A stretch of 55,648 nt of DNA from contig NIVC01001538.1 of NCBI GenBank assembly GCA_002269645.1, positions 1 through 55,648 of the forward strand, given 5' to 3'. The translations under genes and the position numbers were made by a program. Origin of the DNA: Macrostomum lignano. Lineage: Eukaryota. Below the pieces are notes generated by a model. That model did not search any database. It saw nothing but the letters and a program-made list of their open reading frames with translations, and was not told where the DNA came from. The first letter of the stretch is position 1. Each line of letters opens with the position of its first letter. This document shows positions 19,687-55,648 of the stretch, piece after piece.

Positions 19687-19716
19687 TTAGGGTTAGGGTT
19701 AGGGTTAGGGTTAGGG
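19687..19716 (+). repeat. Interstitial telomeric repeat (TTAGGG)5
   Basis: Five perfect TTAGGG units. Confidence 0.85.
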
Positions 19717-29100: not shown

Positions 29101-29215
29101 AAAATGCAGATAAAACCAAATCTGCGACATGCTTAGCACCCTGGAGACAAAAATGCAGATAAAACCAAATCTGAGACATGCTTAGGACGCTGGAGACAAA
29201 AATGCAGATAAAACT
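29101..29215. repeat. 49 bp tandem duplication (aaaatgcagataaaaccaaatctg...ggagaca), ~2.3 copies
   Basis: Read directly. Confidence 0.8.
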
Positions 29216-29315
29216 TGGCTTCGAAAATTATTTTACACAAAGGTATGCAAAACAGGGTTCCTGCTGCTTGGTTGAAGTTTCATTATTTTGACTTTCAGAC
29301 ACCCTTATACCCTAA

Positions 29316-29687: not shown

Positions 29688-30124
29688 CAACCCACATCCC
29701 AGCCAAAGCACAGAGTGTACATGTCTGAAGATTAGAAAATCAGCGCCACTGTACACACCGTGTGAGCGTGTTTATGAGTGCGTGCCTGTACAGTATTGGT
29801 GAGCTTGTACTCATGAGGTCAGAAGTGAGCGGACTGGCTGAGGGACGATGTCGCGGAAAGCATATGCAGGATGCCACAGCGGTCCTGCAAAAATTATCAT
29901 TATAACAAACAGCTGCTATTCCACAGTACAATTTCATAAAGTTGCTTTTTTATGGTTTTAGTAATGCGTTAAATTCTCAAAAATTTTTCACTGCGCGTCA
30001 AAAACAATTTGATCTGCGAAGTACTTGAACTGATCAAAACAAGTCGTTGATTACAGATTATTGGAAAATTGTGTCAGTTGTTGCACAGCTAGTGGATATT
30101 AGTACGAGCTTATACAGAGAGTCC

Positions 30125-30405
30125 TAAACCTAAACCATAAACCCTAACTTACCTAAACCATAAACCATAAACCCTAACCTGAACCCTAAACCACAACCTA
30201 AATTATAAACTCTAAACAAAACCCTAAACCCTAACCCTAAACCACAACCTAAATTATAAACTCTAACCAAAACCCTAAACCCTAACCCTAAACCCTGACC
30301 TAAACCATAAACCTAAACCCTAAACCCCAACCTAAACCGTAACCTAAATGGAAAACCTAACCTGAACATAAAACCCTAATCTAAGCTAAACCCTAACATA
30401 AACCG
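30125..30405. repeat. Degenerate telomere-like (CCCTAA-related) tract
   Basis: Repeated aaaccctaa / aaaccataa / cctaaacc units. Confidence 0.75.
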
Positions 30406-30862
30406 TAGTCAAAAGTCAAAAAGGATCCCCTGACTAGACACAATTCTGGTAGACTTCTTTAAACTAGTACTTTAAGTATTTATTAAGGACACAAATAATC
30501 TAAATATGCTAAAAGTATTAATAAATGTTGTCTTGAAAGGTAACACAGTTAAAGACGCGCTTATTGTGCATTTCTCAACAGATATATATTGAACTTGCAT
30601 CCAATTCAATAATAAGTTGATCTTCACCGATCAATAATTTCCTGGTTGAATTCAACTCAAAACAGAAACACTAAACATAGAATAAACATGGTTTTCCTAT
30701 AAAAATGAGAAAATCACAAAGCATTAGGCTATATTTGCATGACTTGACTGTGAAGTTATAAAAAATCCAAGTTTTTGGCATAAAATACGCACTACTTATT
30801 GTTTATGCTCGTAATTATTATGTTCATCAGTAGTAGTCTAAGAGGGACAATTCTAGCAGCAG

Positions 30863-32858
30863 TTAATCGCTAATGGGGGGCAGGCTGCCTTTGTACATCA
30901 CGCTGGGCGTTCCGCGAATTCCGTCCAGTCCGGTCACGCGGAAGACGCTGCCGGCCTGCGGGTGGGACGGCGGAGCTTCACGTTTGACATGCGACCAGCC
31001 AGTACTCAACTTGTCAGTGAGTGGTGTCTTCGGATTATTTCGTTTAACCCTTTTAATCCTTTAAGACAACCTTTAAATCTTAATTTTACACACAAAGACA
31101 CACCTAGAGAATGGCACTCATCGACAAAGACACGCCTAGATAAAAATACACCGTAGCAAAGACAGACCGTAACAAAGACACTCCTCGACACAGATCCACC
31201 TCGACAAAGACATTCTTCGACAAGACAAGCCTTGGCAAACACACATCTCGATAAAGACATTTCTCAATGGACACCACGACAAAGATACTCCTCGATAGAC
31301 ACCCTCGACAAAGATACTCCTTGATAGACACCATGACAAAGACACCCTTGATAGACACCGTGACAAAGACACTCCTTGATAGACACCGTGACCGTGACAT
31401 AGACACTCCTCCACAAAGACACTCCTCGACAAAAAAATCCTCCATAGACACTCCTTGACAAAGACACTCCTCGACAAAGACACTCCTCGACAAAGACACT
31501 CCTCGACAAAGACACTTCTCGACAAAGACACTCCTCGACAAAGAGACTCCTCGACAAAGGCACTCCTCCACAGACACAGACACAACTCAAAAATGACACA
31601 CCTCGATAGACACCTCAAGAAAGACACGTCGAATATAACACACATGAAGGGACGCAAAAGCCGCAAATACACGAATTAACCCACCTGCGGAGGCGGCTGC
31701 TCTCCCTCGCGCACACCCCAGTGGTTGGCGGTGGTCACAAACAGCTCTCCGTCCGACCCAAAGCAGCAGGAGGTCACGTTGGGCACAGGCATGGGGATCT
31801 GGCTGACCACCTGCCCACTCTGCGGGTCCAGGCACAGAACCCGCGAGCCGAAGAAGCAGGCCACCCACAGCCGCCCATCTGCGTCCACAGCCAGACCGTC
31901 CGGCACGCCGAGCTTCTCCTGCTCGGGCAGCTTCGAGAAGTCGATGGCAACTCGCCGATTCGAGATGCTGAACGCCTCAGCGTCCCAGTCGTAGGCGTAG
32001 ATGACTCGAGCGACTGAGTCGGTGAAGTAGAACGTGTTGCCATGCCAGCCCAAGCCGTTGCTAAGGGAGAATCCTGTGTCCAGCGTCTTGATGGAGCCGT
32101 CCAGGTCAAGGCCGAACAGGCTGCCAGCACCGGGCTTCATCACTAAGCCAGCCTCTTTTTCCAGGCTCATCGTGCCGGCCAGGAGGCGTCCGGCCGGGTC
32201 GCATTTGGCGTCGTTGAATCTGCGGAAGTTTCGTCAGCAAATACTGAAGTTTTTGACTCTGTACTGTGATGACGTTATCGGAGCATTAATATGATTAAAA
32301 TAGTAAGCGTATATTCGCTAACGATTTCGTCACTTATTGATTGGTTTATGGACATAGAATGTGCATATTACATTTCTGAGTTAAACTAGTGTTAATAGTC
32401 ACCTAATAGGCTCCTGAGGATCTACTTTGTGCAGCACTCGACGTTTCAGCTCTCCAGCCTGCCAGTCGCAGTGCACGATGCTCTTGTTAATTCCGGCTAG
32501 GAAGCCGCCACTCTGGCACGGGATGACAAAGCTGACGAAATTGCCAGGCTGTTCACCCACCTGGAAAATAAGAAATAGATATTCTCAGGAAGGGCTGTAT
32601 GGACACCCTGGTGCAACGCCTTCGGGGACATTGTCCGCCACAACGACGCAGCGCCCAGGCAATTTACGCTGGGCTGGTCTTTGCTCCGCTCACCTGGATG
32701 GTGCTGTGATAATTATTCGGCTCACTCCACAGGTGCACCTCGCCATCAGCGATGCTAACAAAGTACAGAGTCTTGGTGACCGGCTCCCAGAAGGGACCTT
32801 CGCCGCAGGTTTTGGCTACAGAGTCCAACAGACAGTTCACTGTGTAGTTTGAAGACAT
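30863..32858 (-). CDS. RGN: SMP-30/regucalcin paralog C; exons 32694-32858, 32403-32560, 31685-32219, 30863-30955
   Basis: Same motifs as paralog A. Four exons in phase (165+158+535+93 = 951 nt), with one extra 133 bp intron relative to A and B. Confidence 0.92.
31090..31625. repeat. Degenerate ~16-17 bp minisatellite (cgacaaagacactcct) in the last intron of paralog C
   Basis: Shares the acaaagacac core with the arrays in paralogs A and B. Confidence 0.85.
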
Positions 32859-33089: not shown

Positions 33090-33350
33090 CTAGAGGATGA
33101 GAGAGAGGAGAGGAGAGGAGAGGAGAGGCGAAAAGAGTAGACGAGAGGAAAGGAGAGAAGAGGAGAGGATAGGAGAAAAGAGGAGGAGAGGAGAGGAGGG
33201 AAGGCTAAGAGAGTAGAGGAGAAGAGAGTAGAGACAAGAAGAGAGGAGAGAGGAGAGGAGATGAGAGGAGAAGAGAGGAGATGAGAGGAAAGGAAAGAAG
33301 AGAGAGGAGAGGAGATGAGAGAAGAGATGAGGAGAGGAGAGGAGAGGGCT
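33090..33350. repeat. GA-rich (gagag/gagga) low-complexity tract
   Basis: Purine-only stretch that resumes at 36610-36710 after the 32 bp array. Confidence 0.9.
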
Positions 33351-36300
33351 CAATGAGGTTGAGTTGCTGAGATGTCAAGGCTCAATGAGGTTGAGTTGCT
33401 GAGATGTCAAGGCTCAATGAGGTTGAGTTGCTGAGATGTCAAGGCTCCATGAGGTTGAGTTGCTGAGATGTCAAGGCTCCATGAGGTTGAGTTGCTGAGA
33501 TGTCAAGGCTCAATGAGGTTGAGTTGCTGAGATGTCAAGGCTCAATGAGGTTGAGTTGCTGAGATGTCAAGGCTCCATGAGGTTGAGTTGCTGAGATGTC
33601 AAGGCTCAATGAGGTTGAGTTGCTGAGATGTCAAGGCTCAATGAGGTTGAGTTGCTGAGATGTCAAGGCTCAATGAGGTTGAGTTGCTGAGATGTCAAGG
33701 CTCAATGAGGTTGAGTTGCTGAGATGTCAAGGCTCAATGAGGTTGAGTTGCTGAGATGTCAAGGCTCCATGAGGTTGAGTTGCTGAGATGTCAAGGCTCA
33801 ATGAGGTTGAGTTGCTGAGATGTCAAGGCTCCATGAGGTTGAGTTGCTGAGATGTCAAGGCTCAATGAGGTTGAGTTGCTGAGATGTCAAGGCTCAATGA
33901 GGTTGAGTTGCTGAGATGTCAAGGTTCCATGAGGTTGAGTTGCTGAGATGTCAAGGCTCAATGAGGTTGAGTTGCTGAGATGTCAAGGCTCAATGAGGTT
34001 GAGTTGCTGAGATGTCAAGGCTCAATGAGGTTGAGTTGCTGAGATGTCAAGGCTCAATGAGGTTGAGTTGCTGAGATGTCAAGGCTCAATGAGGTTGAGT
34101 TGCTGAGATGTCAAGGCTCAATGAGGTTGAGTTGCTGAGATGTCAAGGTTCCATGAGGTTGAGTTGCTGAGATGTCAAGGCTCAATGAGGTTGAGTTGCT
34201 GAGATGTCAAGGCTCAATGAGGTTGAGTTGCTGAGATGTCAAGGCTCAATGAGGTTGAGTTGCTGAGATGTCAAGGCTCAATGAGGTTGAGTTGCTGAGA
34301 TGTCAAGGCTCAATGAGGTTGAGTTGCTGAGATGTCAAGGCTCAATGAGGTTGAGTTGCTGAGATGTCAAGGCTCAATGAGGTTGAGTTGCTGAGATGTC
34401 AAGGCTCAATGAGGTTGAGTTGCTGAGATGTCAAGGCTCAATGAGGTTGAGTTGCTGAGATGTCAAGGCTCAATGAGGTTGAGTTGCTGAGATGTCAAGG
34501 CTCAATGAGGTTGAGTTGCTGAGATGTCAAGGCTCAATGAGGTTGAGTTGCTGAGATGTCAAGGCTCAATGAGGTTGAGTTGCTGAGATGTCAAGGCTCC
34601 ATGAGGTTGAGTTGCTGAGATGTCAAGGCTCCATGAGGTTGAGTTGCTGAGATGTCAAGGCTCAATGAGGTTGAGTTGCTGAGATGTCAAGGCTCAATGA
34701 GGTTGAGTTGCTGAGATGTCAAGGCTCAATGAGGTTGAGTTGCTGAGATGTCAAGGCTCAATGAGGTTGAGTTGCTGAGATGTCAAGGCTCAATGAGGTT
34801 GAGTTGCTGAGATGTCAAGGCTCAATGAGGTTGAGTTGCTGAGATGTCAAGGCTCAATGAGGTTGAGTTGCTGAGATGTCAAGGCTCAATGAGGTTGAGT
34901 TGCTGAGATGTCAAGGCTCCATGAGGTTGAGTTGCTGAGATGTCAAGGCTCAATGAGGTTGAGTTGCTGAGATGTCAAGGCTCCATGAGGTTGAGTTGCT
35001 GAGATGTCAAGGCTCAATGAGGTTGAGTTGCTGAGATGTCAAGGCTCAATGAGGTTGAGTTGCTGAGATGTCAAGGTTCCATGAGGTTGAGTTGCTGAGA
35101 TGTCAAGGCTCAATGAGGTTGAGTTGCTGAGATGTCAAGGCTCAATGAGGTTGAGTTGCTGAGATGTCAAGGCTCAATGAGGTTGAGTTGCTGAGATGTC
35201 AAGGCTCAATGAGGTTGAGTTGCTGAGATGTCAAGGCTCAATGAGGTTGAGTTGCTGAGATGTCAAGGCTCAATGAGGTTGAGTTGCTGAGATGTCAAGG
35301 CTCAATGAGGTTGAGTTGCTGAGATGTCAAGGCTCCATGAGGTTGAGTTGCTGAGATGTCAAGGCTCAATGAGGTTGAGTTGCTGAGATGTCAAGGCTCC
35401 ATGAGGTTGAGTTGCTGAGATGTCAAGGCTCAATGAGGTTGAGTTGCTGAGATGTCAAGGCTCAATGAGGTTGAGTTGCTGAGATGTCAAGGTTCCATGA
35501 GGTTGAGTTGCTGAGATGTCAAGGCTCAATGAGGTTGAGTTGCTGAGATGTCAAGGCTCAATGAGGTTGAGTTGCTGAGATGTCAAGGCTCAATGAGGTT
35601 GAGTTGCTGAGATGTCAAGGCTCAATGAGGTTGAGTTGCTGAGATGTCAAGGCTCAATGAGGTTGAGTTGCTGAGATGTCAAGGCTCAATGAGGTTGAGT
35701 TGCTGAGATGTCAAGGCTCAATGAGGTTGAGTTGCTGAGATGTCAAGGCTCCATGAGGTTGAGTTGCTGAGATGTCAAGGCTCAATGAGGTTGAGTTGCT
35801 GAGATGTCAAGGCTCCATGAGGTTGAGTTGCTGAGATGTCAAGGCTCAATGAGGTTGAGTTGCTGAGATGTCAAGGCTCAATGAGGTTGAGTTGCTGAGA
35901 TGTCAAGGCTCAATGAGGTTGAGTTGCTGAGATGTCAAGGCTCCATGAGGTTGAGTTGCTGAGATGTCAAGGCTCAATGAGGTTGAGTTGCTGAGATGTC
36001 AAGGCTCCATGAGGTTGAGTTGCTGAGATGTCAAGGCTCAATGAGGTTGAGTTGCTGAGATGTCAAGGCTCAATGAGGTTGAGTTGCTGAGATGTCAAGG
36101 TTCCATGAGGTTGAGTTGCTGAGATGTCAAGGCTCAATGAGGTTGAGTTGCTGAGATGTCAAGGCTCAATGAGGTTGAGTTGCTGAGATGTCAAGGCTCA
36201 ATGAGGTTGAGTTGCTGAGATGTCAAGGCTCCATGAGGTTGAGTTGCTGAGATGTCAAGGCTCCATGAGGTTGAGTTGCTGAGATGTCAAGGCTCCATGA

Positions 36301-36608
36301 GGTTGAGTTGCTGAGATGTCAAGGTTCCATGAGGTTGAGTTGCTGAGATGTCAAGGCTCAATGAGGTTGAGTTGCTGAGATGTCAAGGCTCAATGAGGTT
36401 GAGTTGCTGAGATGTCAAGGCTCAATGAGGTTGAGTTGCTGAGATGTCAAGGCTCAATGAGGTTGAGTTGCTGAGATGTCAAGGCTCCATGAGGTTGAGT
36501 TGCTGAGATGTCAAGGCTCAATGAGGTTGAGTTGCTGAGATGTCAAGGCTCAATGAGGTTGAGTTGCTGAGATGTCAAGGCTCAATGAGGTTGAGTTTCT
36601 GAGATGTC
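33349..36608. repeat. Highly homogeneous 32 bp satellite (ctcaatgaggttgagttgctgagatgtcaagg), ~100 copies
   Basis: Only the variants ctcaatg/ctccatg/ttccatg are seen. The array is flanked by GA tracts on both sides. Confidence 0.98.
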
Positions 36609-40054: not shown

Positions 40055-40906
40055 TTATTGGAACCAGGCAGTGGAATCTGGGTCGTTCATATATCGTCGA
40101 AAATCTCGCTCAAAATTAGCTTTGCAACCGGAGCCTGCAGGCTCGGCGGCAGAACTATTGTTGCTTTGCGGAATCTGCTTTTTCTGCTTTTTCGGAGCGG
40201 CCATGCCCAGACCGAGTCGGTCCCGCTTGACAACGGTTGCTAGGGGCTGAGAACGGCCCTGGCCATGTCGACCCAGTCCGCTGCCGGGTGTCCAGCCCTG
40301 TTTAAGCATCATCCGATAAGCTGGGCCAGAGGCTACGCACAATTTTCTGTCAGCTGCTGAACCCGAGGCTGGAGCGGCTGCCTCATCAGGCATCAGAGCC
40401 AGCTGATGAGCAATCGATGCTTGATGAGTTCGAATTGGATCCGAAAAGTTCGATTTACAAATCTGGCAATACAACAGTTTCCGTTTGGCTGGCAATGTCG
40501 GTTTCATCTGTCGAGTCGCGGGCGGAGTCGCCGCTACTACAATGAGGTCGTCATCGTCATCTGTGTCGCTTTCAAGTTCGTTAGCGTCCAGATCGATCCA
40601 AACTAGGGAATCTGCTGTTCTCCTAGCAGCTTCCTCACCATCATCAGCATCATTGACAAGGTCATTGTCGCTTTCACTGTCACTAATAACAATGCAATCG
40701 TCTGAACCTTCGGGCACTGCAGTTGCTGCTGTTAAATCAATAATTTCTGCCTTCGGACGCACCGTGACAATTCTTTGCTGCGGCTCAAGTGTCGAAGGAT
40801 CTACTTCGTCAGCTGAATCGGAATCAATTAAGCTGACAAATCCATGGCTGTTGCGTAAAGTCGATCGGCTTCGACTAGAGCGAGTCGATTTTGAAATCGA
40901 ATTCAT
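40055..40906 (-). CDS. GPANK1: GPANK1-like protein (zinc-finger-like motif + G-patch), intronless, ~283 aa, acidic SIM-rich N-terminus and no ankyrin repeats
   Basis: YCQICKSNF...HQASIAH, G-patch GPAYRMMLKQGWTPGSGLGRHGQGRSQPLATVVKRDRLGLG, and C-terminal ERDFRRYMN, similar to the GPANK1 end ERDLRTYMN. First ATG at 40906. Confidence 0.8.
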   Translation of the reverse strand: MNSISKSTRSSRSRSTLRNSHGFVSLIDSDSADEVDPSTLEPQQRIVTVRPKAEIIDLTAATAVPEGSDDCIVISDSESDNDLVNDADDGEEAARRTADSLVWIDLDANELESDTDDDDDLIVVAATPPATRQMKPTLPAKRKLLYCQICKSNFSDPIRTHQASIAHQLALMPDEAAAPASGSAADRKLCVASGPAYRMMLKQGWTPGSGLGRHGQGRSQPLATVVKRDRLGLGMAAPKKQKKQIPQSNNSSAAEPAGSGCKANFERDFRRYMNDPDSTAWFQ

Positions 40907-43099
40907 GAATTGTTTTTTAGTGTAAATTATTGTGAACAATCTTTCTGACAGACGCTTCGATACATTTATTTGCAAATCGATTTGACATCCATTAAGTGTC
41001 TCTTTAGATAGAACCAGTCAGGTTAGAGAGGAGATTAAAGAGGAGTGGAGGGTAGAAGGAAGAGGGTAAAGAAGGGAGAGGATCTCTCCTCACTTTGACA
41101 CTTTGAATATTCATTCATCCTAATCCTATCAAACCAATAGCTCCAATGGTCTTTCAAGTCTCATTCGAGTGGTACTATTACTAGATAGGCCTATGGGAAC
41201 TAGATATAAGAAATATATATTACCATACCTGTATACTTTAAAAACATCTCTGTATTTATAACTTCTAATAATCCAATAGCCATAACTATAGCTATAGTGG
41301 AACTATAAAAATTGATAACTGACAACTAATAAAATTAGAAGTATAAGCATATCCATTAGTCTGTTTCATTATATACAAGCTACCAGAAATATCCAGCATA
41401 AGTCTAGAGAAATATTAGCTTTTGCATAAATGCCTGGCATAAAAACAACTACACATGATTTTCTGGAGTGCCATTACAACAAGTCCCATGTAACTTAATT
41501 GTATTTGATAAAACATAGAATTTAAATTCTATAATTTGTGTTGCAATAATGCAACAACTTTTTTGTTTAATGTTTTGATATGTCTTGTATTTATAAATTG
41601 TAACAGGGGTATTTTTTCTATTTAATGAAAGTTCACTAATGCCATCAAGCTATTATAGTGCTTTTTGTTCTCCCTCTTTAAAATCTTACTATTATTAGCT
41701 TACTAGTAGCATATTATATAAATTCGGTAGCAAAAATGTACTTTTGGCCTAAGTGGTCTTATGGCACTTGTACTTTATCTTATCCTATGTATTATGGCTT
41801 AAAACTATGTTTTATTCTCTCACTTCATTACTGGAGAGATCAGAGGGTTACATCTAACAGTGGTAGATTTATTGCCCTAGGTCTAGAGGTCTTATCCTTG
41901 GGTGGATATTCTGCCTTCTAAGGTGATATTATAGATTCTAAATCTAAAAGTCTTGTTCTCTAAGAATGGAGAAAATTCTCTAGTATTTTGCCATAGTTAT
42001 GGCTATGGCTATGGGATCCTATGGCAAATATGGTAAAATAGGTGCCTACAACAACTACAGATATGCCTACAGTAGATAGCTGCTCTTACAGCTACAACTA
42101 TGGAAATATGGTAGTTGCTATCATATTTTGTAGATTCCTATAGCCATAGTTATTAATTTAAAAAAATATTAGAAACAGGTTAAGTAAAAAAGATACTTTG
42201 GTAAACTATAAATTATATATAGACTTAGAAACTTAACTTATAGCTCGTACCTAATAAAGTACAATAAAATATTAGCAAACACTAACTTTTAATAATGTGA
42301 AAAAGTTTAGCAGTAATACTTTCAGTAGTGATTAAGTATTGTTCCTCTTTGTAAAAATATGAAATATAATCTTACAAAGGCAATCAAGTGTTTTCTTTGT
42401 TTTCTATCTTAATTTGCAATTGTTTAACTACTAGGTTATCTTTCTGGTTCAAAATATTTTGTTTCCTAGACTTTGTGAAAATTATGGCTATGGCTACTAT
42501 GGGAATATAGTAATATTGGAGTCTCTTTGGCTATGGAATATGGAGAATTGGAATAAGCCATAGTTTTGCTTATAGCTATAGATAGCTATGGTACATGGAC
42601 CCTCCTTATAGTGGAACACTAAAATTCTCCCAACCTTGGGGCTATTCCTATGTCACTATCTACTACTCAAAATAAGTAGGCTAACATGAGAGCAAATACT
42701 TAGCCTTAAAGCTGATTATCAGTTTTGTTTCCAATGTTGAATAATTTGGAGACCACTTAAATATTGCTCAGACTAAATCAGAACAGAAAAGACATACTTT
42801 ATTTGGCTTTGTCTTATAGCTGGTTTCTATTTATAACAAAATTTTTTCATATTTTTTAAAACAAAATATCATATACAAGATAACTGTCCATGCTACCTCC
42901 CATTGTCCATTATACTTAGAATAGCCTAACCTACGCTTGGTATAAGTCTGGCAGTGGCACAGGCATAAATGATAAAATGAAATAATTAATTGATATTAAT
43001 TAGTACCATTAAATAATGGTACTAGTGTAGCTTCATTTGCAACATTATTTTTCTTTTGAATTTAGCTAAACTAATTGCCTAATAGGCAGTGCTTATTCC

Positions 43100-43512
43100 C
43101 ACGGTATTGTAGGAATAATTTCTGTCTTATTCCAATGGTACTGTGGGAATAATTTTCTGCTTATCCACATGGCACACTGACGAGATAGCTGCCCCATCTT
43201 CTACATATGCCGTGGAAATAATTAGTTTAGTACTTACGGTTTAAGTGCAGTATAACAATATAACTTTGCTTGACAATTTGTTTAATTGAAGTAAAGATTA
43301 AATAACTTTTTTATGCAAAAAACGCTGGTTGTGGTGTTGATCCAGATCAACAGCATCTTAGTATCCTCAATTCAAATTCCCTTTTAAAAAGCTATAAACT
43401 ATTCATATACAGCATATATATGTAGAAGATATGGCAGCTATCTTGTCAGTGTGCCATGCGTAAAAGCAGAAAATTATTCCCACGGTACCATTGGAAAAGG
43501 ACAGAAATTATT
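43100..43512. mobile_element. Foldback/MITE-like element with ~100 bp inverted arms
   Basis: ttccaatggtactgtgggaataattttctgc...gagatagctgccccatcttctacatatg has a reverse-complement match at ~43410-43500. Confidence 0.75.
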
Positions 43513-44277
43513 TGGAAAATTAGGAGTTTGATCATTCAATACTTCATTTGGTGGCACTATCCAACTGAATTTTTGGTCGCAGTAATAAAATATGCTTATA
43601 AATATAAGAATACTTATTGCCTTAGAAAAAATAGATTTAGTAATGTGCAAGCGCTTAATGCTACTAATAGTAATAATAATAGTTTTTGTAAATAAATTTT
43701 GTCAATAATAATTTTGAGTTTAATCACTCAAGAATAGTATTCACATATTATTTGTTTTAATCTTCTAACATTTAATAATAATATTCATGTAAAATTTGTA
43801 TGTATTTTTAAACTGAAAACTAATTTTAGCCCTATTTGTTTTAATACTGCATATATCAAAATTAATATTGATCAAGTCTCAAAATAGTATAAATAGACGG
43901 GATCTGGCCAGAGAGCCACCAACTGGCTGATTGCCTGTTCCTAAATTAGTCTCAAGTCTCGCTACTTGTTGAGCCTTAAACTGTTACTTAGAAATCTTTT
44001 CAAGACTTAGTAAATTTTTCGATTCAAAGAGTGAAGTGGAAGTTAATCATATCACAGATACTACTGATACTCAGAATACCAAGGAGATTGAAGTGAAACA
44101 AAGTAGATCTCGGGAATACATATACAGTATTGAGAAGGCAGTGACCCTCTAATCTCGGGAATGCCTAAAGCCTAAAGGACTGGACTAGACGATCAGATAC
44201 TTAATTAACTACAAAAGGGTTACAAGGAAGATCATTCTGAGAAATACATTCCAGGCCAATAGTAGACCACTCGGCAT

Positions 44278-44345
44278 ATACTAAGAACGCTACCAAGGCA
44301 TATACTAAGAACGCTACCAATACATATACTAAGAACGCTACCAAT
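44278..44345. repeat. ~22 bp tandem repeat (catatactaagaacgctaccaa) x3
   Basis: Read directly. Confidence 0.8.
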
Positions 44346-45597
44346 AGAAGTAGATACTTAGACTAATCCTTAGACATATACCTAGACTTATCCTTAGACT
44401 TATACTTAGACTGATACTTAAAGACTTATACTCAGACCTATTCTAAGAAAAATTTCTCAGATTATTCTAATATTGATAAAAATTTATTAATTGAATAATC
44501 TTGGTGGCAACTACCAACCTAAGAAGAACACTTGAGAGATTAGTAAATTAGCCCTGTGACAGCTTTTGGTGACAGTGTGAAATTATTATTACAGACAGAA
44601 GTAACCCCTACGACAGTAAAAATGTTTTTTGCTATTCTTCCCACTCAGTAACTATCAGGCTGCAGGCCACCATCCCTTTGGGCCATAGATAACTCATAGG
44701 GTAGACTTCTTTGCCACATTAGCATTAATGATAGATCCAAATATTCAATTGAAATCCAAAAGGTCTCACTATTTTAGAAATCCAAGTATTTTGGATTCAG
44801 AAATTCTATTTTCTGAATTTCTGAATGTGCTTTTACATGATCTAGAGGCTTTTCATATTCCTGATTCCATTTTTAGAACTGGTTCAATACTTTTCATTTT
44901 GCCAATTCCGTTTTCAGAATCGGTTCTAGAACCTTACTTTGGTTCTGGAATTTGGTTTGACAAAATTTCTCAATTCGTTTACATATTTCTATGGAAAAAA
45001 TGAAAAATATTTAAAGTCAATTTAACTTCAAATATAACTTCAAAGGTAAGTAAGTAACTTGGAAAAAATTTTTTAATGTTTAAAGTAATTTTTGACTAAA
45101 AATAAAATTTACTTGATGCTTTTCATTTTCTTAGCGAATCTGGTTCTGGAATCGGATTTTATTCCAATTCTGGAGTAGACTTTGTAAAAAAGGCTACTAG
45201 TTATCTAGAGTGTGGTAATAATAATAGGTTATTATATTCCTTTGAACTATTGACTTGTAGTTACCAAAATTATATATAGTACAAAAAAGAATCTTACTAC
45301 AATACTTTTGTCATGATAATAACATCTTAACAGCAGTCAGTAAGCCCTAGTTTTAAATTTAAGGAAAGTCAGAAAAATGAAAGCAAAGGCGAACATTTGC
45401 ATTTTATCTTTGATAATACAAAATTACGAAATTACAATTTATTAATCAATCTTCACGCGACATGTTTTGCCAAACAATTGGCATCTTCATACTTTAGGCA
45501 AGGCAATAATATATTTTCAGAGAGATGGTAAATTATTTAAAGTCTAGTAGGCCAAAAAGATTGTAAGTATGGGTAACTGAGTTAGATGGCCCTAGAT

Positions 45598-45795
45598 AAG
45601 AGGCAAGCGCATGGGGTCAGAACACCCTTAGATGGACTTCACTGCTGAGATTGGTAACAAAACTTTAAACTTTCTCAATGTCTCTACTCTTGAAGTGTTG
45701 TACATTAAACAGCTAAAGCCCACCATGAACATCCAACTCGGTGGTAGAGGGGCGAGTGTCTATCTAAGGGTGTTCTGAACCCATGTGCTTGCCTC
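45598..45795. mobile_element. Small hairpin/MITE-like element
   Basis: aggcaagcgcatggggtcagaacacccttagat versus atctaagggtgttctgaacccatgtgcttgcct (~33 bp inverted arms). Confidence 0.65.
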
Positions 45796-46164
45796 CTATT
45801 TAGAATGTTTCTTTATGAACTATGAGTATATACAGTTTTATTTAAATTTTATATGGCTAACAAATAGCATACAGGCACAAAAGAGTGGTAAAGTATAAAT
45901 ACCCTGGGCTAGATTTCCTATGAATTAATTTCTCACATATATTTGCTCTTAGAGTTTTAAAAGGCACCAACAATTCATTCCATTGTTGTACCACTGACTG
46001 ATTAGGCTTCTGTCATAGTATTAGCTTTTATATATTGTGATTTCTAGCATTTGTTAATCATATGCAATAGCATAGGCTGTCATCAGCCTAAAATGATTGT
46101 GTAAGAGCAATAAAAGTAAGTATAAATTGAAATTTTTTATTTCAGATCAAATTCATTAAAAAAC

Positions 46165-49100
46165 ATGCCTAAGAAATTTCAAATTAAGAAAAAATCGAGG
46201 TTCATTGACCAAGAAGGCAAATCACGCATATTCGACTGAGTTCTACTGCTGCTCAGGAATTGTCTAGGTAGGTAATATGTTTTTTGGTTAAAATTGCTTA
46301 TTAATATCATCCTTATGATGGCAAAGGAAGCTATGAAACTTCTAAAAGGTACAGTTGGCATGCGTCCGGCTTTCAGGCATGTCAATCAGCATAGTGTCAC
46401 TGTTAGTGACACTACTATGACTGAGTTGGTCCCAAATATCGAAAGTATTGATCTCTTCTCTACTGACCATGCATTGGATCCATCAGATCCCAGCACTGCC
46501 AGCAGATATGATATCCATCAAGAAAAAGAGGAAGAAGCCTGGTCCAGCTTAGCAAGCCAACTTGAGACTAGATTGGCCTCTTATTACTCTCGTCTTTCTC
46601 CTGCATGTTGCGCATGCAGGGAAGTAGGAGAAACTTTTCGCTGCAAAGCCTGCCATTTGCTCAACATATGCAAAACATGCCTTACTTCTGCTCACTCACA
46701 TAATCCACCACATGTCGTCTACAAATGGACCGTTTTTTTTATTGATTAGAGGCAGGGGGGTTGTGTGCACCCTGGCGCACTTTAGGCGACAGGCACACAA
46801 CCGGCGAGAGGCATTACTGCCCATTCCGCCAACTCCCCTGAGCAGGCATACAAGCGCGGATAGGTTACGCAGGCACACACTCACACAGGAGTGTACAACG
46901 GCCCTAACTTTATCAATTGTTAGGCATGTACACTTCACTGCGCCTTGGGGGGTTGGCTCTCAAGGCTGTTAATTGCACAAGCGAGCCAAGCCGAAATTCC
47001 AATTCAGCCCCAAATTAATGTGGCTGCACTTGGAATCGAGCCTGGGCCGCTGGCACACCAGAGCAGCTGCGCTACTGCTGGGCTACAGCCCCCCTACAAA
47101 CAAATGGACTGTGAGTTCAAAAACAGTTATCATTGTTCTATGCCATAGACATGTGTTAATGAAAATTTCTATTAGCGTGCTGAATCAGCACTGCTGATAA
47201 TGGGGCATTACTGCACGCTGTCTATGGCCAAAGAACAATGAAATATTCACACGCTGACTGAGTGCAGGAAGGACCGTAGACATAAGTGCGTGCATCCCTG
47301 ATCCTTCAGTGACTCAGCTACCCCTTGAGACCCCACGCTTGTGTCTAGGTCCTTGCCGCACTCAGTCAGCATGTAATATTAATGCATTGTCTCAAACTTT
47401 TGTTTCGATTTTAAGACGCCAAGTTCGTTTATTTATTTACCTACTTACCTAGCCTCTTATTAACGAATCTCTAAACGTCTCCATGTATATCTGTAAAATA
47501 TGATGGTAAAGTTTTTTAACATAAAAGTGATGTTATGTGTCCTTTCAGGGCTCATTCTACAAGACAGTTAAAACTGTGGTTCATATTACCAGACGCAGTG
47601 TTTGTAGCTGCGAGACTGTCACTTCCAGGTCCATTACAGCACTAAATAGAGAAGGTGTATTAAGTTTTAATCTACCATGTACTATTTGTATTCACTGTAT
47701 TTGTCAAATTTTATCTGCTATTCTTAAATTACTTCAAGCATTCTCAAGAGAATGTTTTGATAATTAGGCCCTGTCTTATGTCTTAAATGTCTGCATAGTG
47801 AAACCAAATTAATAGAATTCAATATAATATATTGAAACAATTAAATATGGTAGTCTTTGTGGATCTGCTGCCATCTGTTCTTTGAAGAATATTTCAATAG
47901 AAAAAGATGTTGGGTGTCTTATTGATATGAAATTGTAATGTAAAGTTACTTAAAGTATATTCTCGCTTTCAAACCAGGAGACAAGATTTCACTTTCTGTC
48001 AAGGAGTGTGCCTGTACTGATATTTTTGCCAACCTCTTATTGCATGGATTCTGGCCGACGCAACCTTTCACTAATGTTACTAGAATCGTTGCTATCATTT
48101 TAACCTGCTTCTGACACTGGACAGCATTTCATCACGTTATTCCGTGTCACTGTCATCACTATGTGAAGCCTGGAGTAACAGCCAGAATTCTCTATGGCTA
48201 CGTCCACCAATTCAGGTAGGCAGCACAGTAAAAAATTTAAGCAAGAACAATTTCTTATTATATCTAATAATTATAGGCTTCCCAAATCATAGTATAATTC
48301 TTTTATTAAACAATTAATCAGATAAGTTAGCTGACAACCTGCTCTCAGTAGGTATATAGGTATAATAAATTGTAGTTTTATGTGTGCCTGGCTTTTTTAT
48401 TAATTATTTTTTACTTTTTTTGCCAGTTGTAGTTTGAAATACTTTCGAAAACTTTGAAAGACTATTCTTAATCAGAAAATGTGATCTAACAATCGTCTAT
48501 TTTAGGTCAACATATTCCATGCGTTAAACACATCCAGCAGCTTTCAAGCATTTTGACGGCTTTTGATATATATTCGCTGGGGCCCTAAAGCAACATGCCT
48601 GTCGTGCTTCATCGTAAAGGTTTTATTATTTTATCTTACTCGTCAATTATATTTTCTGCATACTTATATTTTTATAATGAAAAATATAATAATTAATATA
48701 TTTATATATATGTTTTATAATTATATTTAAACCAGTTACAAAACATACTGTTAAGGGTTGTGCCCTGCCCTTTCTATACAGGAGACACAAACGAACAGCA
48801 GCGGCTTAGGCAATGACGCTAATTGTGCCGCTATATCTACTGAAGTCGAAGATGTCCTATGCTGCTTCTCTGTCAGTAGAAATCCAACCATTCCTGTTTT
48901 TTAGATGCTGGATGCCTGCTTCGGTTTTAGACACCGAAGGCTTGCTAGAAAAGCTGTGCTTCCACCATCCACTGGCTATTTTGTCAATGTGGACTTTCAA
49001 ATGTCAGAAGTCCCTAGCAAGTCCTATTGTCCCAATTGGACTGCTGGATGTTGTGGAAAAGACCTTACGACTGCATCTGACGAAAGTAAGCTTGACATTT

Positions 49101-50770
49101 TTGGCTTATTCTGTGGATCCTGCCGGCACTCTGCTGTTTCTTATCTTTCCGACCTCGTGACAAAAGGAGAAAGGTAAGATTGCAACACATACTTCTATAA
49201 AGACATGTCCATCTACTTTTATTTCTCCTTTCATTCTGGAAAATCTTTTTCTTACTAGAAAAGGTTCTTTTTAAATAATTTCATGTAAATTCTGTATATA
49301 CTACTAATATAAAGTGCGCATTGGTTTTTCATTGTTTCTCAGGCTTGCCTACTCTAAAGCCATGGTTTCTAAGCTTCTGGACGATAATCCAGAAGACCAG
49401 AAGCTTGTTGTCTCTTATGACATCGGTTGCAAGCTTGCTGGTCACTTCAGTGATGCCAAAGTCAGCTTTGCCATTCTAGCTTTTCACTCATATGGCCACA
49501 AAGAGGCCTGCCAAACTAAGTTTGGCATTTGACACCAATCCGGAGTAGGCTTGACTGATGGCAAAAGCTGTGAATGGCTTTGGTCTATGTCACGGCGCTT
49601 TGGGCCACAGTTGAAGGAAATGACTCATGTCAACAGGCGCGAATTCCTTAACTATTGGGTGAGCTCCGTCAATCTAAACGTCATTAATACTATTAGTGAG
49701 TTGTCCGAAATTCTATGAAGTATAAGCATATACTTTGCAGCATTTTCCTAAACTATATCATAATCTCTTTATAGGGACAAAGTTTTTAATTACTAAGGCT
49801 TTTCTTACCAGTTAGCCTCTTTCAGCTGCCTGCCTTCATTTAATGCATGAATTTGTTCGCGTATGTTCATTTTCATCATTTTTTTCATCATAACTTTTTA
49901 ACTTCTTCCTAAATTTGTTTATAGGTGTCTGGCTTTTTCAACAAACCAAGGTAGAGGAGCAAAGCCTGAAGCGTTTTCAATTGAAGTTCAATCATTCTGC
50001 CAAAAGAATGGACTAGATGATATGTTGCATGTTTGCAATGGCCTAGTAGGGCTGTTCTACATTAAGAAAACTGAGTTACTACGTCAGCTATTGTAAACAT
50101 TGGAGGGAATGGTGAGCAATGATTATGGATAAGCTACTTTAATTAAAAAGGCATTATTTAATATTTAATATATTATTTTTTAATATTTAATATTTAATAT
50201 TTAATTGCGTCGTAAATGTTTAAATGCATTCGTTTTTGTTTTTGTCCCGTATCCAAAGAAAAATGTAAGCTGAAGCACTAAATATGTCCACACGCTGGAT
50301 AATAATGGCTAGTGTAGGCATCTACTTTATTTACTTTACTTTCACCAGGTGATATTGAATCCTTTGTCGGCAATTGTCGCGTTTGGGAGCAGGAGCTGCT
50401 GCATTCCGCTGATAATGACACTTGTGGACTAACGAGGAGAATGCCTAAAGAAGCTGTTCTCAGTAAGCTGCAGCAGCTAGCATGTGAACGTGCGTTTCTA
50501 ATTCGACAAGCAGCTACTGCAGCTGGCCAAAAGCTCAACAAAGTGCTAAACAGGTCTCTTAACAAACTTACTGCGAAGGGCGAGAAGCTAGTCAAAGAGC
50601 ACAATGCAAATTGCTATCCTACTGGAATGATCAGATTGACCAACATTTGGAACACCTGCACTGACGCTACTTCTGCAGTGCCTGATCACGCACTGAAGCG
50701 ACAAGTGGTCAAGCTATTAAAGCTTTATCAACGAATCAACGAAGAGGCTAGCCTGGTGGAGAAGAGCAGA
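46165..50770 (+). mobile_element. Decayed, intron-containing Kyakuja-Dileera-Zisupton (KDZ) transposase gene with CxC cysteine clusters
   Basis: Spliced exons give CCACRE..FRCKACHLLNICKTCLTSAHSHNPPHVVYKW (46600-46730), ECACTDIFANLLLHGFWPTQP (~48005-48065), LDACFGFRHRR (~48905), LDIFGLFCGSCRHSAVSYLSDLVTKGER (~49090-49172) and VVSYDIGCKL...AFHSYGHKEACQTKF...GVGLTDGKSCEWLWS (49343-49590). These match the KDZ hallmarks D-x-x-F, G-x-F-x-x-x-CRH..GE, YDIGC, FHxxGH...CQ and GxGLxDGExCERxWS. Premature stops and frameshifts are present. Confidence 0.87.
46733..47090 (-). mobile_element. tRNA-derived SINE inserted at the end of a KDZ transposase exon
   Basis: Full homology to 29316-29687. Poly(T) at 46733-46740 is the tail. 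The flanking direct repeat acaaatggac (46721-46730 and 47099-47108) is the likely TSD. Confidence 0.87.
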
Positions 50771-52190
50771 GGAGAGTAGGGAAGAACGGGGAAGAGGGGG
50801 AAGAGCGGAGGAGAGTGGGGAAGAGCGGAGGAGAGTGGAGAAGAGCGGAGGAGAGTGGAGAAGAGCGGAGGAGAGTGGGGAAGAGCGGGGAAGAGGGGGA
50901 AGAGTGGAGGAGAGTGGGGAAGAGCGAAGGAGAGGGGAAGAGCAGGGAAGAGGGGGGGAGAGCGGAGGAGAGTGGAGAAGAGCGGAGTAGAGTGGGGAAG
51001 ATCAGAGGAGAGTGGGGAAGAGCAGGGAAGAGCTGCAGAGAGGAGAGAAGAGCTGCAGAGAACAAAGAAGAGAGGATAAGCAGAGGAGAGCAGAAAGAGG
51101 GGGAGAGTGGGGAGCGATATAGAGTAGAGAGAGGGAGAGGGTGAGTGGGGGATGGGGGTAGAGTGAGTGGGAGGGAGAGGTGGATGGGGAGAGGTGGTGG
51201 CAAGGGGGTAGAGTAGGGGAGAGCGGGAGGCGGGGGAAAAGAGGGAGCAGTGTAGAGTAGGGAGAGGGGAAGAAGGGGAGAGGGGGAAGAGGGGAGAGGG
51301 GAAGAGGGGGAGAGGAGGAAGAGGGGAGAGGGGGAAAGGGGGACTAGTGGAGAGCAGGGGTAGAGTGGGGAGCAAGGGGAGAGGGGTAGAGTAGGGAGAG
51401 GGGCAGAGGGGTAGTAGGAGAGAGGGGGACTGGTAGAAAGGGGGAGAGTGGGAGTGAGCAGGGATATAGTAGGGGAAAAGGGGAGAGCAAGGGGAGAGCA
51501 GGGGAAAGCTGAAAGAGAGGGTGAGTAGGGAGCAGTGAAGAGTAGCAAGGGGGGAAGAGGGGAGAGAGGGTCTGGAAGAGAATGGAGGAGAGTAAGGGGA
51601 TAGCAGGGGAGAGTGGGAAGAGGGAGAGGGTAGGAGAGTAGTGAAGAGTAGGTTTAAGGGGGAGGAGAAAGGCAGACTGGATAATAGAAGAAAGAGTAAG
51701 GGAACAGTGTAGAATAAGGATGGGGAAGAGGGGGAATTAGAGCCTAGGGGAGAGAGGGAGAATAGGTGAGTAGGGTAGAGTAGAGGGAGAGATGAAAACT
51801 GAGGGAGAGGGGAAGAAAGTAGAGAATGTAGAGAAAGAAAAGGGAGAAGTGAGGGAAGGGGGGACTAGGGGAGAGAAGAGAATGGGCAAGCAATATAGTG
51901 TAGGGAGAGAAGAGAGAAAAAGAGACTTGGAGAGAGGGGGAAGAATGGGGAAGCAAGGGTAGAATAGGGGAGAGATAGAGAGCATTGGAGAGCAAAGGAA
52001 AGTGAATGAGATAAAGTGTGGAAAGAGGGCAGGAGAAAGTAGACAAGAGTGGTCAGAGCAAAGGAAAGGTAGAAAAGCCAGGGAGAATAGGCCCCTAAAG
52101 AAAGAGAGGATAATAAAGGAGAGGGAGTATAGTATAGGGTAAGGAGATATAGGGGAGAGAATATAGGGGTAAGAAGAAAAGTGGGGAGAA
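50760..52190. repeat. GA-rich polypurine tract truncating the KDZ ORF
   Basis: It begins as regular gaagagcggaggagagtgg units and degenerates rightwards into gagtag/gtatag-rich purine sequence. Confidence 0.9.
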
Positions 52191-52242
52191 TTAATTCTTT
52201 AAATTTATTTTTTTAACTGCATATAATATAATTAATTATAGT

Positions 52243-52792
52243 GGCAATCCTACACTTCCGTTCGGTAAATTATTTTGACATTGAATTTTGAACAGGCGTG
52301 GTAAATAACAATGTAACCAAACAAAACTAAAACAGTGGAACATGGTAGCAGTCTGTTAGAGCGCATAGTCACTTAGAGTGTCTATAGGTCATTAAGGTGT
52401 CTACAATGGATAGTAATGTCCAATCCAGTACAGGATAGCCCCAAATGGACATTGGGGATACAGACGACGCCAGAGAAATTCCTCAATGTGTGCATCAAAG
52501 AGAGCGTCGCTCGTGCCATGCATGTTGCGGATCTTGCGCTTCGCGTGGGCCCATGTGCCCTCCACGGTGTTGGTGTGGACATGTCTCCATGGCAATGAAG
52601 ACTGGAAGATATGAGAAATTGAAGCTCAATAAAACAAGCAGCTCACAAGCAACAGCTCCTTAAACTGACACCCCTTTAAACTCTGTTCGCTCAAACTTTT
52701 GGCCATAGACACATTGCCAATCGACGTCATTTGACTCGGTGGTACGAATTCAAATGTGAAAATAATTTACCGAACGGAAGTGTAGGATTGCC
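52243..52792 (-). mobile_element. Non-autonomous Merlin (IS1595-like) DNA transposon, internal deletion derivative
   Basis: ~45 bp TIRs ggcaatcctacacttccgttcggtaaattattt / aaataatttaccgaacggaagtgtaggattgcc. The internal C-terminal transposase remnant HTNTVEGTWAHAKRK...GTSDALFDAHIEEFLWRR (52401-52595) matches the IS1595/Merlin HTNxIEGxW...EFxWR motif. The TSD is not cleanly readable. Confidence 0.88.
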
Positions 52793-55648
52793 ATTAGGCC
52801 TATAGTCATATAGAAAGCTTAGCTCTGACTTGCTAACCTAGATTTATATAATTTAAAGTTGCTATATAAGACAAGGAGAGAAAGGCAAATAAAGATACAA
52901 AAAATTCATAGTAGGCTAAATTACTTGAAGTATAAAAAACTGAAATAGTATGGCAGGACTATTACTTCCATCTAGGCCAATGATAGAGATAGGCCTATAG
53001 GATAGGGCCTGTATATATACTAATGTAGGCCTTGTAGGCCAAATTAAAGTAATTTGCCATGTATTTTAAGCTATTAACTATCTACCTAATTGTGACCTTA
53101 CTAAACCACAGAATTCACATTGGCTATATATTAGTTCATATAATCATATGTGAATTATATTAGAATATAATTCACATACCACATGCTACAGCATGGCATG
53201 TGCTAAGCAGTTCCAAAATACCATAAGCTAGGGGCCTACCTACCATAAGCGAGTGGTCAGATATAATAATATATCAGTGCTTTACAAGGCCTACATGTTC
53301 GGTATAGCCTTAGAAGCATTCGTTTTGCATGGTTTTCGCTATGGTCTGGCGAACCTGAATTCGCGAAACTTATTATTACTTAATTTTTTATTAATAAGGA
53401 ATTTATTTTTCTGTCTTAAATTTTTCATAAAGTATTAAAGCTTAAAGAAAATAAAGTTTTGTTTTATAAGATGACGCAAAATTTGTTTTAAAACATTTGC
53501 CTCGGAACATATGCCTCGGTTCAGTTGATATCAACATCTGGGCCTCTTTTACCACTTATCTCATCTTGGAACTCGGATTAGGCTATACACACGTGTATAC
53601 ATAAAATATCACGCGGAAATTGCAGCTCAGAAAACGTACCTGAATTCTGCAGCCGCACCACCACCTACTCGACCAGATTAGAAACGAATATCTTGAGTTG
53701 CAATGTCGTCGCGGCCGTGCAACTTCTCTTAGAACTTCAGCAAATTTTAGTTACTATTACAAAAATAAAAATAAAAATTCTAAATATACTGAGAATTTAT
53801 TGAATTGCATGTACATGCGTTTTCCCCGACGCTGAGGGTCGAGAAGATCCAAGGCAATTGTGGTTAAGAATTAAGAGGATTCGATCCTCAACCCTTACCG
53901 ATTTCTTGTCTTATCTTAACTCATTGCATGGTTCTGTACGTGCGGCGGTGCATGGATTCGGCGATGTCTTGCGATGTTTGTCTTTGGCTTACCGATTTCC
54001 CGGGATCCTCTATGGAGCTCCCTCGTCGATCTCTCTGCAATCACTCCCGCTAAAGCTCCTCTAAATATAATTGTTCGAAATCACTGAAGCAGCAAGATTT
54101 TAGCAAAGTTGCTATAAAATGCATTTTTCAAGTCCGGGGTGAAAAATATTAGAGAGTTGTTGAGCAGATCTATGACGTCACGTACCCGACCAAGCGTAAT
54201 CCGTAGCCACATCACTGCATGCAAATGTACGGTACGTACATGTGTATAGATGTACGTCAGCCATTTGTAACTTCTCGCTATACATACATGTATGTACATG
54301 TACGACATGTATAGTAGAAGTTTATATAGAGAAACTTCTCGCTAGTTTTTTTGTCCCTTGATCGCCATGCAATTCCCGTACACTCCTAAATATGCATGTG
54401 TGACGTAATCAGGTTTTTAAAAGCTCGTACATGTAAGTAACATGTAACTTGCGATTGATATAAATTTTTGTTTTAATTTTAAGTACGGCCATTTCAGTAG
54501 GTCAGTTTTTGGAAGCCATCATGCACTATAATTCTGTCCACAGGAAGCGCCCATGGAGCTGCGGTCAAATTTGACAGCAAATGGTCACGCCATCATGCAG
54601 CAATACCAGAGTCTCACGACCCTGGAGATGAGTGTTAATTGTACTCCTATGAATGCGCGCGCCTGCGTACGTAACGGTGTTGGTTTAGGAGTCAGTGCAA
54701 ATGAAGGTAGAATTGCCTATATAGCCGCTGGTTCAGGTATACAGCAATTATAGCCGTCCTTGACATATATACATATGTATTATAGTCATTATATTTTCTT
54801 TATTAATTGCTTTTGGCGAAGTGTTGAACCAACCCTCCCAACAATCCCATGTAAAGCAAACTGCCTCTACTATTCAAAACCCGCACTCATGGCCTGCATA
54901 TGAGTCCTAAATGCATATACTACATTCATAATTAATGCACTAATCACTTATAATTGTCTGGATCTCCGTCCGTGCCTGCTGCTACAATAAACTAGCAATA
55001 TTAATTAGCAACGATCTCTATACTGCCTGAAGCTTGACTATAACGTACTCGCCCAGTGAAAAATGATTCATGGATTCCACGTGGGTTCCACGTGGCCATG
55101 TGGAATTTAAATGTTTCTTTAATTTTTGCAAATTAATGACTTAAAGATGACATAATGGTATGCAAAGTATTTTTTACGCATTATTTTTTTATTTTTACTG
55201 TCCTAATGTTGATGTGGATTTTACAAGGAATTCATGAGAAATAAGCGTATATTGATTCAATATGGAATCCACTTCGATAAAAAACTGTGATACACCACAT
55301 TCAGACGTTTTTATGAAATTTCTAAAATTAATTATTATATTTATATGCTTTTAAGTAAAAATTAATATCTTAAAGCTAAATTATAATCGGAAAAAAGGAC
55401 ACTTTTTGTTAAAATAGACAAAATAGAAGTAAACAATAAAAATGTTTCGTGCTTTTTAAAATTAAATTACTTTTTTATATTCGTCAATGTCTTGGTTCAA
55501 GGCCTTGAAAGATAAATTGCCTTGTTTATGGCTATTTAAGCACCTTAAAAAAATTAGTAGACCTAGCCTATAGGCAATAACTTATAAGACCATGGCCTCC
55601 ATGGGATTAGAAATTAGATAAATCAGTATTTTATCATAGATAGGCCTA

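Follow-up and report, generated by a model that had tools for sequence, protein, structure and literature searches.

The window analysed here, 55,648 nt of contig NIVC01001538.1 (positions 1–55648, forward strand, assembly GCA_002269645.1) from Macrostomum lignano, a free-living flatworm in which transgenesis is possible, holds at 46.2–50.8 kb a gene divided into several exons whose translation carries the core motifs of a KDZ transposase. The locus raises the question whether this is a working transposase, a gene of the host or the relic of a transposon, and to which KDZ lineage it belongs. To our knowledge the KDZ superfamily is among the least characterised groups of eukaryotic DNA transposons, with defined ends only for Zisupton and a few fungal elements and with no structure or biochemistry. 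The region is very probably the fossil of an autonomous DNA transposon from the KDZ superfamily, a reading based on the match to the KDZ profile, the closest proteins (KDZ proteins of M. lignano itself), a gene structure shared with an intact paralogue, the terminal inverted repeats (TIRs) of that paralogue, a conserved terminus, the multi-copy nature of the families, the predicted fold and the lesions of the copy.

The KDZ gene of the window and its relatives

Six-frame translation, with coding blocks bounded by AG and GT, gave a KDZ gene on the plus strand at 46315–50779 consisting of eight GT-AG-separated exons. Exon 1 (46315–46731) encodes the N-terminal region and ends in a B-box/ZZ-like cysteine cluster, CCACREVGETFRCKACHLLNICKTCLTSAHSHNPPHVVYKW (46606–46728), while the second cluster, SVCSCE...ECACT...HGFWPTQP, begins in exon 2 (47549–47654) as the start of a CxC-type region that is completed in exon 3 (47978–48215). 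Exon 4 (48506–48619) contains a CPAC-type motif, here CLSC, exon 5 (48905–49173) the first part of the KDZ core with LDACFG and 60% identity in tblastn to the M. lignano protein P0001 described below, and exon 6 (49343–49695) the motif SYDIGC; these are followed by exon 7 (49925–50023) and by exon 8 (50349–50779), which encodes the C-terminal helical region and closes with the stop codon TAG (50777–50779). All introns end in AG, and the donors are GTGTAT, GTAGGC, GTTTTA, GTAAGA, GTGAGT and GTTGCA, the original GTGAGT donor of exon 1 having been displaced to 47111 behind an inserted short interspersed nuclear element (SINE). For exon 6 the perfect GTGAGT at 49696 was preferred over an earlier GT at 49659 because the resulting junction ...NTIS|VWLFQQ... 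then matches ...NNIS VWLFSR... in P0001. A possible extra 5' exon on the same strand (46166–46265, with an ATG at 46166 and the donor GTAGGT at 46266) is a candidate only; it would correspond to the short first exon of the intact paralogous gene in L001, and tblastn gives no support either way, the N-termini of the relatives being unconserved. The first-pass annotation of the region (46165–50770), made from the letters alone, had placed a multi-exon GT-AG structure, two cysteine clusters and KDZ core motifs here, and these are borne out by the eight exons and by the frame of a homologous contig (see below).

When compared with Pfam, the window protein matched the KDZ profile PF18758 with E=4.4e-33 (115 bits, cutoff 26.6) over profile positions 6–211 of 217, so that the profile check proposed earlier turned out in favour of a KDZ protein, while the second cysteine cluster reached 16–20 bits with CxC1 (PF18802), which is below the cutoff of 26.9. 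The core motifs are LDACFG, SYDIGCK, FHSYGHKEACQ and GLTDGKSCEW. At the catalytic positions both Asp are kept (48911–48913 in LDACFG and 49419–49421 in SYDIGC) and the third acid is replaced by Lys (49563–49565 in TDGKSCEW), the substitution that the annotation had read there; the same is seen in the homologous contig L005, and all three acids are intact in P0001, P0006 and P0007. Loss of the third acid fits a dead copy and does not speak against descent from a KDZ transposase.

The best match of the window protein was the M. lignano protein A0A1I8GP41 (P0001, 703 amino acids, aa), with 48–51% identity over 90% of the length, after which a word-indexed search gave only basidiomycete KDZ proteins, which cover 22% of the query and are ~30% identical there; with P0001 as query two more M. 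lignano proteins were found. An exhaustive search with a profile made from P0001, P0006 and P0007 gave 3388 representatives at E<1e-3 and 51 at E<1e-30, the top ranks being held by the M. lignano proteins P0010, P0012, P0013, P0026, P0028 and P0039 and one Logan contig. The next ranks, 125–200 bits, consist of uncharacterized proteins from three Branchiostoma species, Priapulus, Mytilus, Littorina, Tubulanus, Lytechinus, Patiria, Apostichopus and Astyanax (for example Branchiostoma belcheri XP_019643793.1, Priapulus XP_014669631.1, Patiria XP_038050149.1, Lytechinus XP_041481377.1 and Astyanax XP_022539248.1), and fungal CxC2 proteins (Mycena, Serendipita, Laetiporus, Artomyces) rank lower at ~96–110 bits. 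The bilaterian relatives are ~850–900 aa long, carry no Ulp1 domain and have the same architecture as the window protein; a Pfam scan of ten of them revealed KDZ together with CxC1/CxC2 in all ten and a weak B-box in two. Among 60 relatives the cutoff is passed by 41 for CxC1 and by 39 for CxC2. This three-module architecture is thus spread across Bilateria under labels such as "uncharacterized protein".

Within M. lignano the KDZ families are multi-copy, with identical proteins on 4–5 contigs for several of them, and form at least 12 clusters at 50% identity with 15–50% identity among clusters, so that the flatworm hosts a diverse KDZ radiation. The proposal that this may be an undescribed invertebrate KDZ lineage holds in so far as no paper describing KDZ elements of Macrostomum was found (one Tc1/mariner study has the words Macrostomum and Zisupton once each), but UniProt and NCBI already list the proteins themselves under automatically assigned KDZ/CxC/B-box labels. 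A neighbour-joining tree built on 208 columns of the core groups the window protein with P0001, P0007 and P0011 (bootstrap 93%) and supports a Macrostomum clade A (88%), a Macrostomum clade B (89%) and a fungal CxC2 group (93%); deeper nodes have bootstrap values of 15–42%, that of the supergroup being 21.5%. No fungal sequence is nested inside the Macrostomum clade in this tree, and the Ulp1-bearing proteins P0076, P0083 and P0086 (Trametes, Mycena) sit elsewhere, in a separate fungal clade. Separately, the 2.9-kb Logan contig SRR30276804_113339 (L013) contains at 210–2456 an uninterrupted 748-aa open reading frame (ORF) of the clade-A relative P0009; the contig represents either a transcript after splicing or a copy devoid of introns, and it has no DNA similarity to the window.

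An intact paralogous element and its place among KDZ transposons

The paralogue P0006, on locus L001, is encoded by an intact gene of 630 aa with nine exons, the last eight of which match the window exons in position and phase. The seven intron positions and their phases are the same in both genes, and the lengths of exons 2 to 7 (L001/window) are 103/106, 239/238, 108/114, 326/269, 353/353 and 96/99 nt. The L001 element occupies 6646–16569 (9.9 kb) and is bounded by TIRs of 249 nt that differ by 2 mismatches (99% identical); it starts with CACCCGTG and ends with CACGGGTG, giving 5'-CA...TG-3' termini, and is flanked on both sides by the 6-bp direct repeat CTCATT, readings of 7 and 8 bp giving mismatches. 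The element is AT-rich compared with its flanks. Outside the transposase gene it contains no other ORF of at least 120 aa and no TET/JBP gene, and tblastx against the window element showed the transposase to be the only shared part.

The L001 terminus CACCCGTGTCACACTCCG matches CATCAGTGTCACAATCACG at 14 of 18 positions in register, for which the chance was estimated at ~4e-6. The latter sequence was found independently as the homology breakpoint of two P0010 loci (L007 and L008), 5 kb upstream of a clade-A KDZ gene, where the left end of the element begins with CATCAG. As judged from the sequences there is good evidence that L001 is a genuine cut-and-paste transposon and that its terminal motif is conserved, and the L001-type family looks as if it has been recently active in M. 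lignano. The search for TIRs, a target-site duplication (TSD) and an intact master copy, as first suggested, was unsuccessful around the window copy itself but yielded this paralogue with its 249-bp TIRs, a candidate for an active element in a flatworm that lends itself to experiments. For clade B the ends could not be read in L006 or in four copies (L009–L012) due to satellite arrays and rearrangements, and the right end of the P0010 family was not recovered because of an assembly gap. Directly downstream of the clade-B KDZ genes a SET-domain gene is located at two loci (L006 14863–16865 and L010 13238–14236), and it may be a passenger of this element family.

To characterise the N-terminal region, a hidden Markov model of the module CxxC..[YF]RCxxC..CxxC..H..H..W was used, which matches the window protein at E=3.6e-16. 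When only proteins having 200 or more residues N-terminal to the KDZ core are counted, the module is present in 5/6 proteins of Macrostomum clade A, 3/3 of clade B, 22/26 of the bilaterian group and 4/6 of the fungal CxC2 group, i.e. 34/41 in these groups, and in 0/46 from all other clades, among them the proteins with C-terminal Ulp1 (P0076, P0083 and P0086) and the Puccinia proteins with strong CxC1 matches. The first cluster of the window protein aligns to residues 82–130 of the fungal protein P0008, directly ahead of its CxC2 domain (BLASTP 2e-9), and the CxC region aligns to the CxC2 region of the same protein. Profile comparison with PDB sequences gave only marginal matches, the module resembling ZZ and B-box structures and the others being coiled coils; ANCHR-like B-box matches from Pfam occur in relatives, and UniProt labels several M. 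lignano proteins "B box-type domain-containing". The N-terminal zinc module thus sets this group, along with the fungal CxC2 proteins, apart from the clades of Ulp1 and CxC1 type and offers a concrete character for revising the KDZ classification.

Zisupton, which Bohne and co-workers reportedly described in 2012, is said to occur in fish, some invertebrates and fungi. Membership of the window element in Zisupton proper, the zinc-finger and SUMO-protease family with an 8-bp TSD first described in fish, would place it in a group already covered, and the two have in common the KDZ core with the same Pfam domain, a multi-exon gene (PMC9297572), TIRs and animal hosts; RepeatMasker-type pipelines would probably label the window element DNA/Zisupton. 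However, no match to Peptidase_C48 or SWIM was found in the window protein, in P0001, P0006 and P0007 or in the ten bilaterian relatives, and the Ulp1 proteins P0076, P0083 and P0086, which lack the B-box-like module, are placed elsewhere in the tree. Zisupton proteins moreover reach ~1400 aa and carry an Ulp1/SUMO-protease domain, compared with ~650–900 aa here, and the paralogue is flanked by a 6-bp repeat as opposed to 8 bp, which taken together make this assignment very unlikely. KDZ elements of animals have been known from Zisupton in fish and other metazoans and from the case of Pristionchus (PMC9297572), and a Daphnia protein belongs to the KDZ set of Iyer as cited in PMC12730594.

The likeness to fungal sequences could also suggest that a Kyakuja-type element of a basidiomycete was acquired recently by horizontal transfer: a fungal CxC2-KDZ protein can be aligned with both the first cluster and the CxC region, the paralogue has CA..TG termini resembling those of fungal Kyakuja (PMC12730594), and the word-indexed search found only fungi after M. 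lignano. The exhaustive search, which puts bilaterian proteins (125–200 bits) above the fungal CxC2 proteins (~96–110 bits), the old in-lineage radiation indicated by at least 12 M. lignano clusters with 15–50% mutual identity, and the animal-like introns kept among paralogues make such a transfer highly improbable. The layout described initially as Kyakuja-like and not Zisupton-like accordingly stands with regard to the missing Peptidase_C48 and SWIM domains and the alignment ahead of CxC2 in P0008, but it is not specially fungal, being standard in a bilaterian-wide group closer to the window protein than any fungus.

Among the fungal systems Kyakuja, with which the fungal CxC2 clade is presumably to be equated (by elimination), resembles the window protein and its relatives in the KDZ core, in the module ahead of CxC and in having no Ulp1 domain, and differs in that the window family has an 8–9-exon gene and an animal host. 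The 5'-CA...TG-3' termini of Kyakuja-1/2_LB (PMC12730594) recur in the L001 paralogue, the likeness being seen on paralogues only, while Kyakuja is reported to lack TIRs and to have a 7-bp TSD (PMC12730594), as opposed to the 249-bp TIRs and 6-bp repeat of L001, and the TET/JBP passenger of many fungal Kyakuja elements is not found in L001. At the fungal KDZ loci L002 (Artomyces pyxidatus) and L003 (Suillus plorans) a search for TET/JBP neighbours gave none; a Cauli_VI (PF01693) gene adjoins the KDZ gene at both (L002 6814–8156 and L003 13214–14393). Dileera and the Cryptococcus elements KDZ1–3 (PMC11343200) are similar to L001 in size (~9–11 kb), long TIRs (236 bp in Cryptococcus KDZ1 against 249 bp in L001; PMC11343200) and a CxC + KDZ transposase, whereas a strong CxC1 match, an 8-bp TSD and, in Puccinia, GACC... 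termini set Dileera apart from the Macrostomum elements; no B-box-like module is present in the Puccinia CxC1 clade, which is placed in another part of the tree than the window group. The 6-bp repeat of L001, known from one element, matches neither the 7 bp of Kyakuja nor the 8 bp of Zisupton and Dileera (PMC12730594, PMC11343200).

The bilaterian proteins have the same three modules (B-box-like, CxC1/2 and KDZ), are the closest ones outside Macrostomum by profile score and are often multi-copy, yet they are ~24–28% identical to P0001, and the Macrostomum proteins fall into two clades of their own (A and B), with a CxC region that is more divergent and below the Pfam cutoffs. It is conceivable, although we put this forward tentatively and give it slightly less than an even chance, that Macrostomum and its bilaterian relatives constitute an unnamed fourth KDZ lineage, allied to the fungal CxC2 (Kyakuja-type) elements. 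Such a lineage would be defined by a B-box/ZZ-like finger, CxC and KDZ in proteins of ~650–900 aa without Ulp1, a multi-exon gene, long TIRs, CAYCMGTGTCACA termini and a TSD of ~6 bp, with at least one family (L001) still or very recently active. The window copy itself, being a fossil, adds little to this; of more weight is that at least one M. lignano element looks intact.

Decay of the window copy and the predicted transposase

The exons of the window gene do not join into an open frame, due to a deletion of 1 nt and three in-frame stops. The deletion is located in exon 3 at ~48096, where tblastn shows a change of frame (at 48096) and the exon has 238 nt compared with 239 nt in both L005 and L001; it is not shared with L005. 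The stops, TGA in exon 4 (48554–48556), TGA in exon 6 (49530–49532) and TAG in exon 7 (50014–50016), are common to the window and L005, as are the changes DGE>DGK and ER>EW in the third catalytic motif (49563–49565). At the end of exon 8 the C-terminal tail of P0001 is replaced in the window copy by a GA-rich tandem repeat. A tRNA-derived SINE of 369 bp (46731–47099, minus strand, with a T-run at its left end) is inserted 1 nt before the splice donor of exon 1 and is flanked by the 10-bp TSD ACAAATGGAC (46721–46730 and 47100–47109); further copies of this ~370-bp SINE with poly-A tail are found in the window at 29316–29688 and 26059–26363 (~85% identity) and in L005 at 19352–19724, and its head was not called as a tRNA by ARAGORN. 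The window copy is a pseudogene, an immobile and decaying relic unable to work. Of the spliced KDZ transposase in an animal genome that had been announced, the intron-bearing KDZ gene in M. lignano thus remains and the working transposase does not; what lies here is an unremarkable dead copy of a transposon whose family has been little described.

The comparison with L005 dates these lesions relative to each other. The window shares repeat families with an M. lignano contig, and its G-patch ORF (40055–40975, minus strand) is 98% identical to BOX15_Mlig032911g2, whose contig L005 (NIVC01002209.1) contains the same dead KDZ gene with 97% identity to the window and is collinear with window 28–51 kb at 96–99% identity. 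When spliced with the window exon coordinates, L005 stays in frame over all seven introns until a private deletion in exon 8, which gives independent support for the exon model. Private lesions of L005 are a TAG in exon 3, this 1-nt deletion in exon 8 and a start codon changed from ATG to ACG. The SINE of the KDZ gene is absent in L005, where the gap in the alignment, 379 nt long, has exactly the size of the insert together with one copy of the duplication, so that this is an insertion polymorphism, and the SINE was inserted later than the divergence of the window and L005 copies, which are alleles or homeologs. Since the three stops are common to both, the element was inactive before the two alleles or homeologs diverged.

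That a functional spliced transposase or a domesticated host gene should be expressed from the window locus, as the clean GT-AG exon structure kept with an intact paralogue and the 748-aa ORF on the 2.9-kb contig L013 (relatives being probably transcribed and spliced) might suggest, is very hard to reconcile with three in-frame stops, a frameshift, the Glu>Lys change, a SINE at the exon 1 donor and an L005 copy that shares the three stops and has gathered further private lesions, as in neutral decay and not conservation.

When aligning window 41950–51379 with L005 1–9008, 175 substitutions were found, 143 transitions and 32 transversions, about half of them at ancestral CpG and including 11 CA<->TG double hits; the window copy has decayed largely through CpG transitions. 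The observed/expected ratio of CpG is 0.28 upstream of the KDZ gene (41.0–46.2 kb), 0.56 in the KDZ gene and 0.81 in the host genes at 25–33 kb. This pattern fits deamination of 5-methylcytosine in a methylated transposon and hints that transposons are methylation targets in M. lignano, a species that reportedly retains both DNMT1 and DNMT3 and has low levels of methylation (PMC11292947). Divergence from L005 is patchy, with ~2.8% at 45–49 kb (the 5' half of the element and its upstream region) and ~0.25% at 49.1–51 kb (exons 5–8 and their introns); gene conversion, haplotype recombination or local hypermutation are possible causes.

Judging from what is known of the family, the single 8–9-exon gene of a live element would be transcribed and spliced to give a transposase of ~700 aa. 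At its N-terminus two zinc modules, first a cross-brace finger of B-box/ZZ-like type and then the CxC cluster, would bind the element ends. Excision of the element and its pasting elsewhere, with a short TSD left behind, would be the task of a DDE core of the RNase H-like type (Asp in LDACFG, Asp in YDIxC and Glu in DGE). These three acidic positions are invariant in the intact relatives. The AlphaFold model of P0001 (predicted local distance difference test 81.6, predicted template modelling score 0.83) places D278 in strand 273–280, D390 just after strand 385–388 and E438 immediately before helix 439–455, so that the succession of the acids in the model agrees with that of RNase H-like DDE cores, and the core is followed by a long helical C-terminal half.

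Several observations weigh against the interpretation as a fossil transposon. No TIRs, TSD or terminal motif were found at the ends of the window copy by repeat search, by sensitive blastn of upstream against downstream sequence or with the motif of the paralogue, and its identity as a transposon therefore rests on homology to its relatives. TIRs and the 6-bp repeat are known from a single paralogous element, the putative transposition of L001-type elements is read from sequence, and intron positions kept among paralogues at ~40% identity would also fit a family of host genes. When the full-length P0001 model was compared with PDB by Foldseek, only long-helix noise with E>0.1 was obtained, which leaves topology and Pfam as the basis for the DDE fold.

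Other features of the window

The window contains further repeats and element fragments. Within intron 1 of the KDZ gene a small hairpin inverted repeat resembling a miniature inverted-repeat transposable element (MITE) is found at 47242–47380, and MITE-like inverted repeats are located upstream at 45592–45803 (46-nt arms, 89%) and 43114–43512 (95-nt arms, 91%). On the other side, at 52239–52796, a 71-nt inverted-repeat pair (80% complementary) surrounds an ORF fragment of an IS1595/ISXO2-like (Merlin-type) transposase (52401–52595; Pfam E=1e-4, below cutoff). Reverse transcriptase fragments of a retrotransposon lacking long terminal repeats (RVT_1, below cutoff) are situated at 4550–5516 on the minus strand, abutting a 23-bp satellite.

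Much of the window consists of large satellite arrays (5516–9573, 12030–15323, 33347–36608, 16797–18209 and 18518–19192), with units of 23 bp (x176), 20/139 bp, 32 bp (x102, 98% identity), 49 bp and 23 bp; the 23-bp array at 18518–19192 and the 32-bp array recur in L001. At 25276–32170 on the minus strand an SGL/regucalcin (SMP-30) gene is present in triplicate, the tandem copies alternating with microsatellite-like repeats in coding frame, and a gene of this type is also present in L005 (16164–18177). At 30123–30404 there is a degenerate interstitial array of the CCCTAAA/CCTAAAC type (7 nt, TTTAGGG-like) mixed with CCCTAA-like units.

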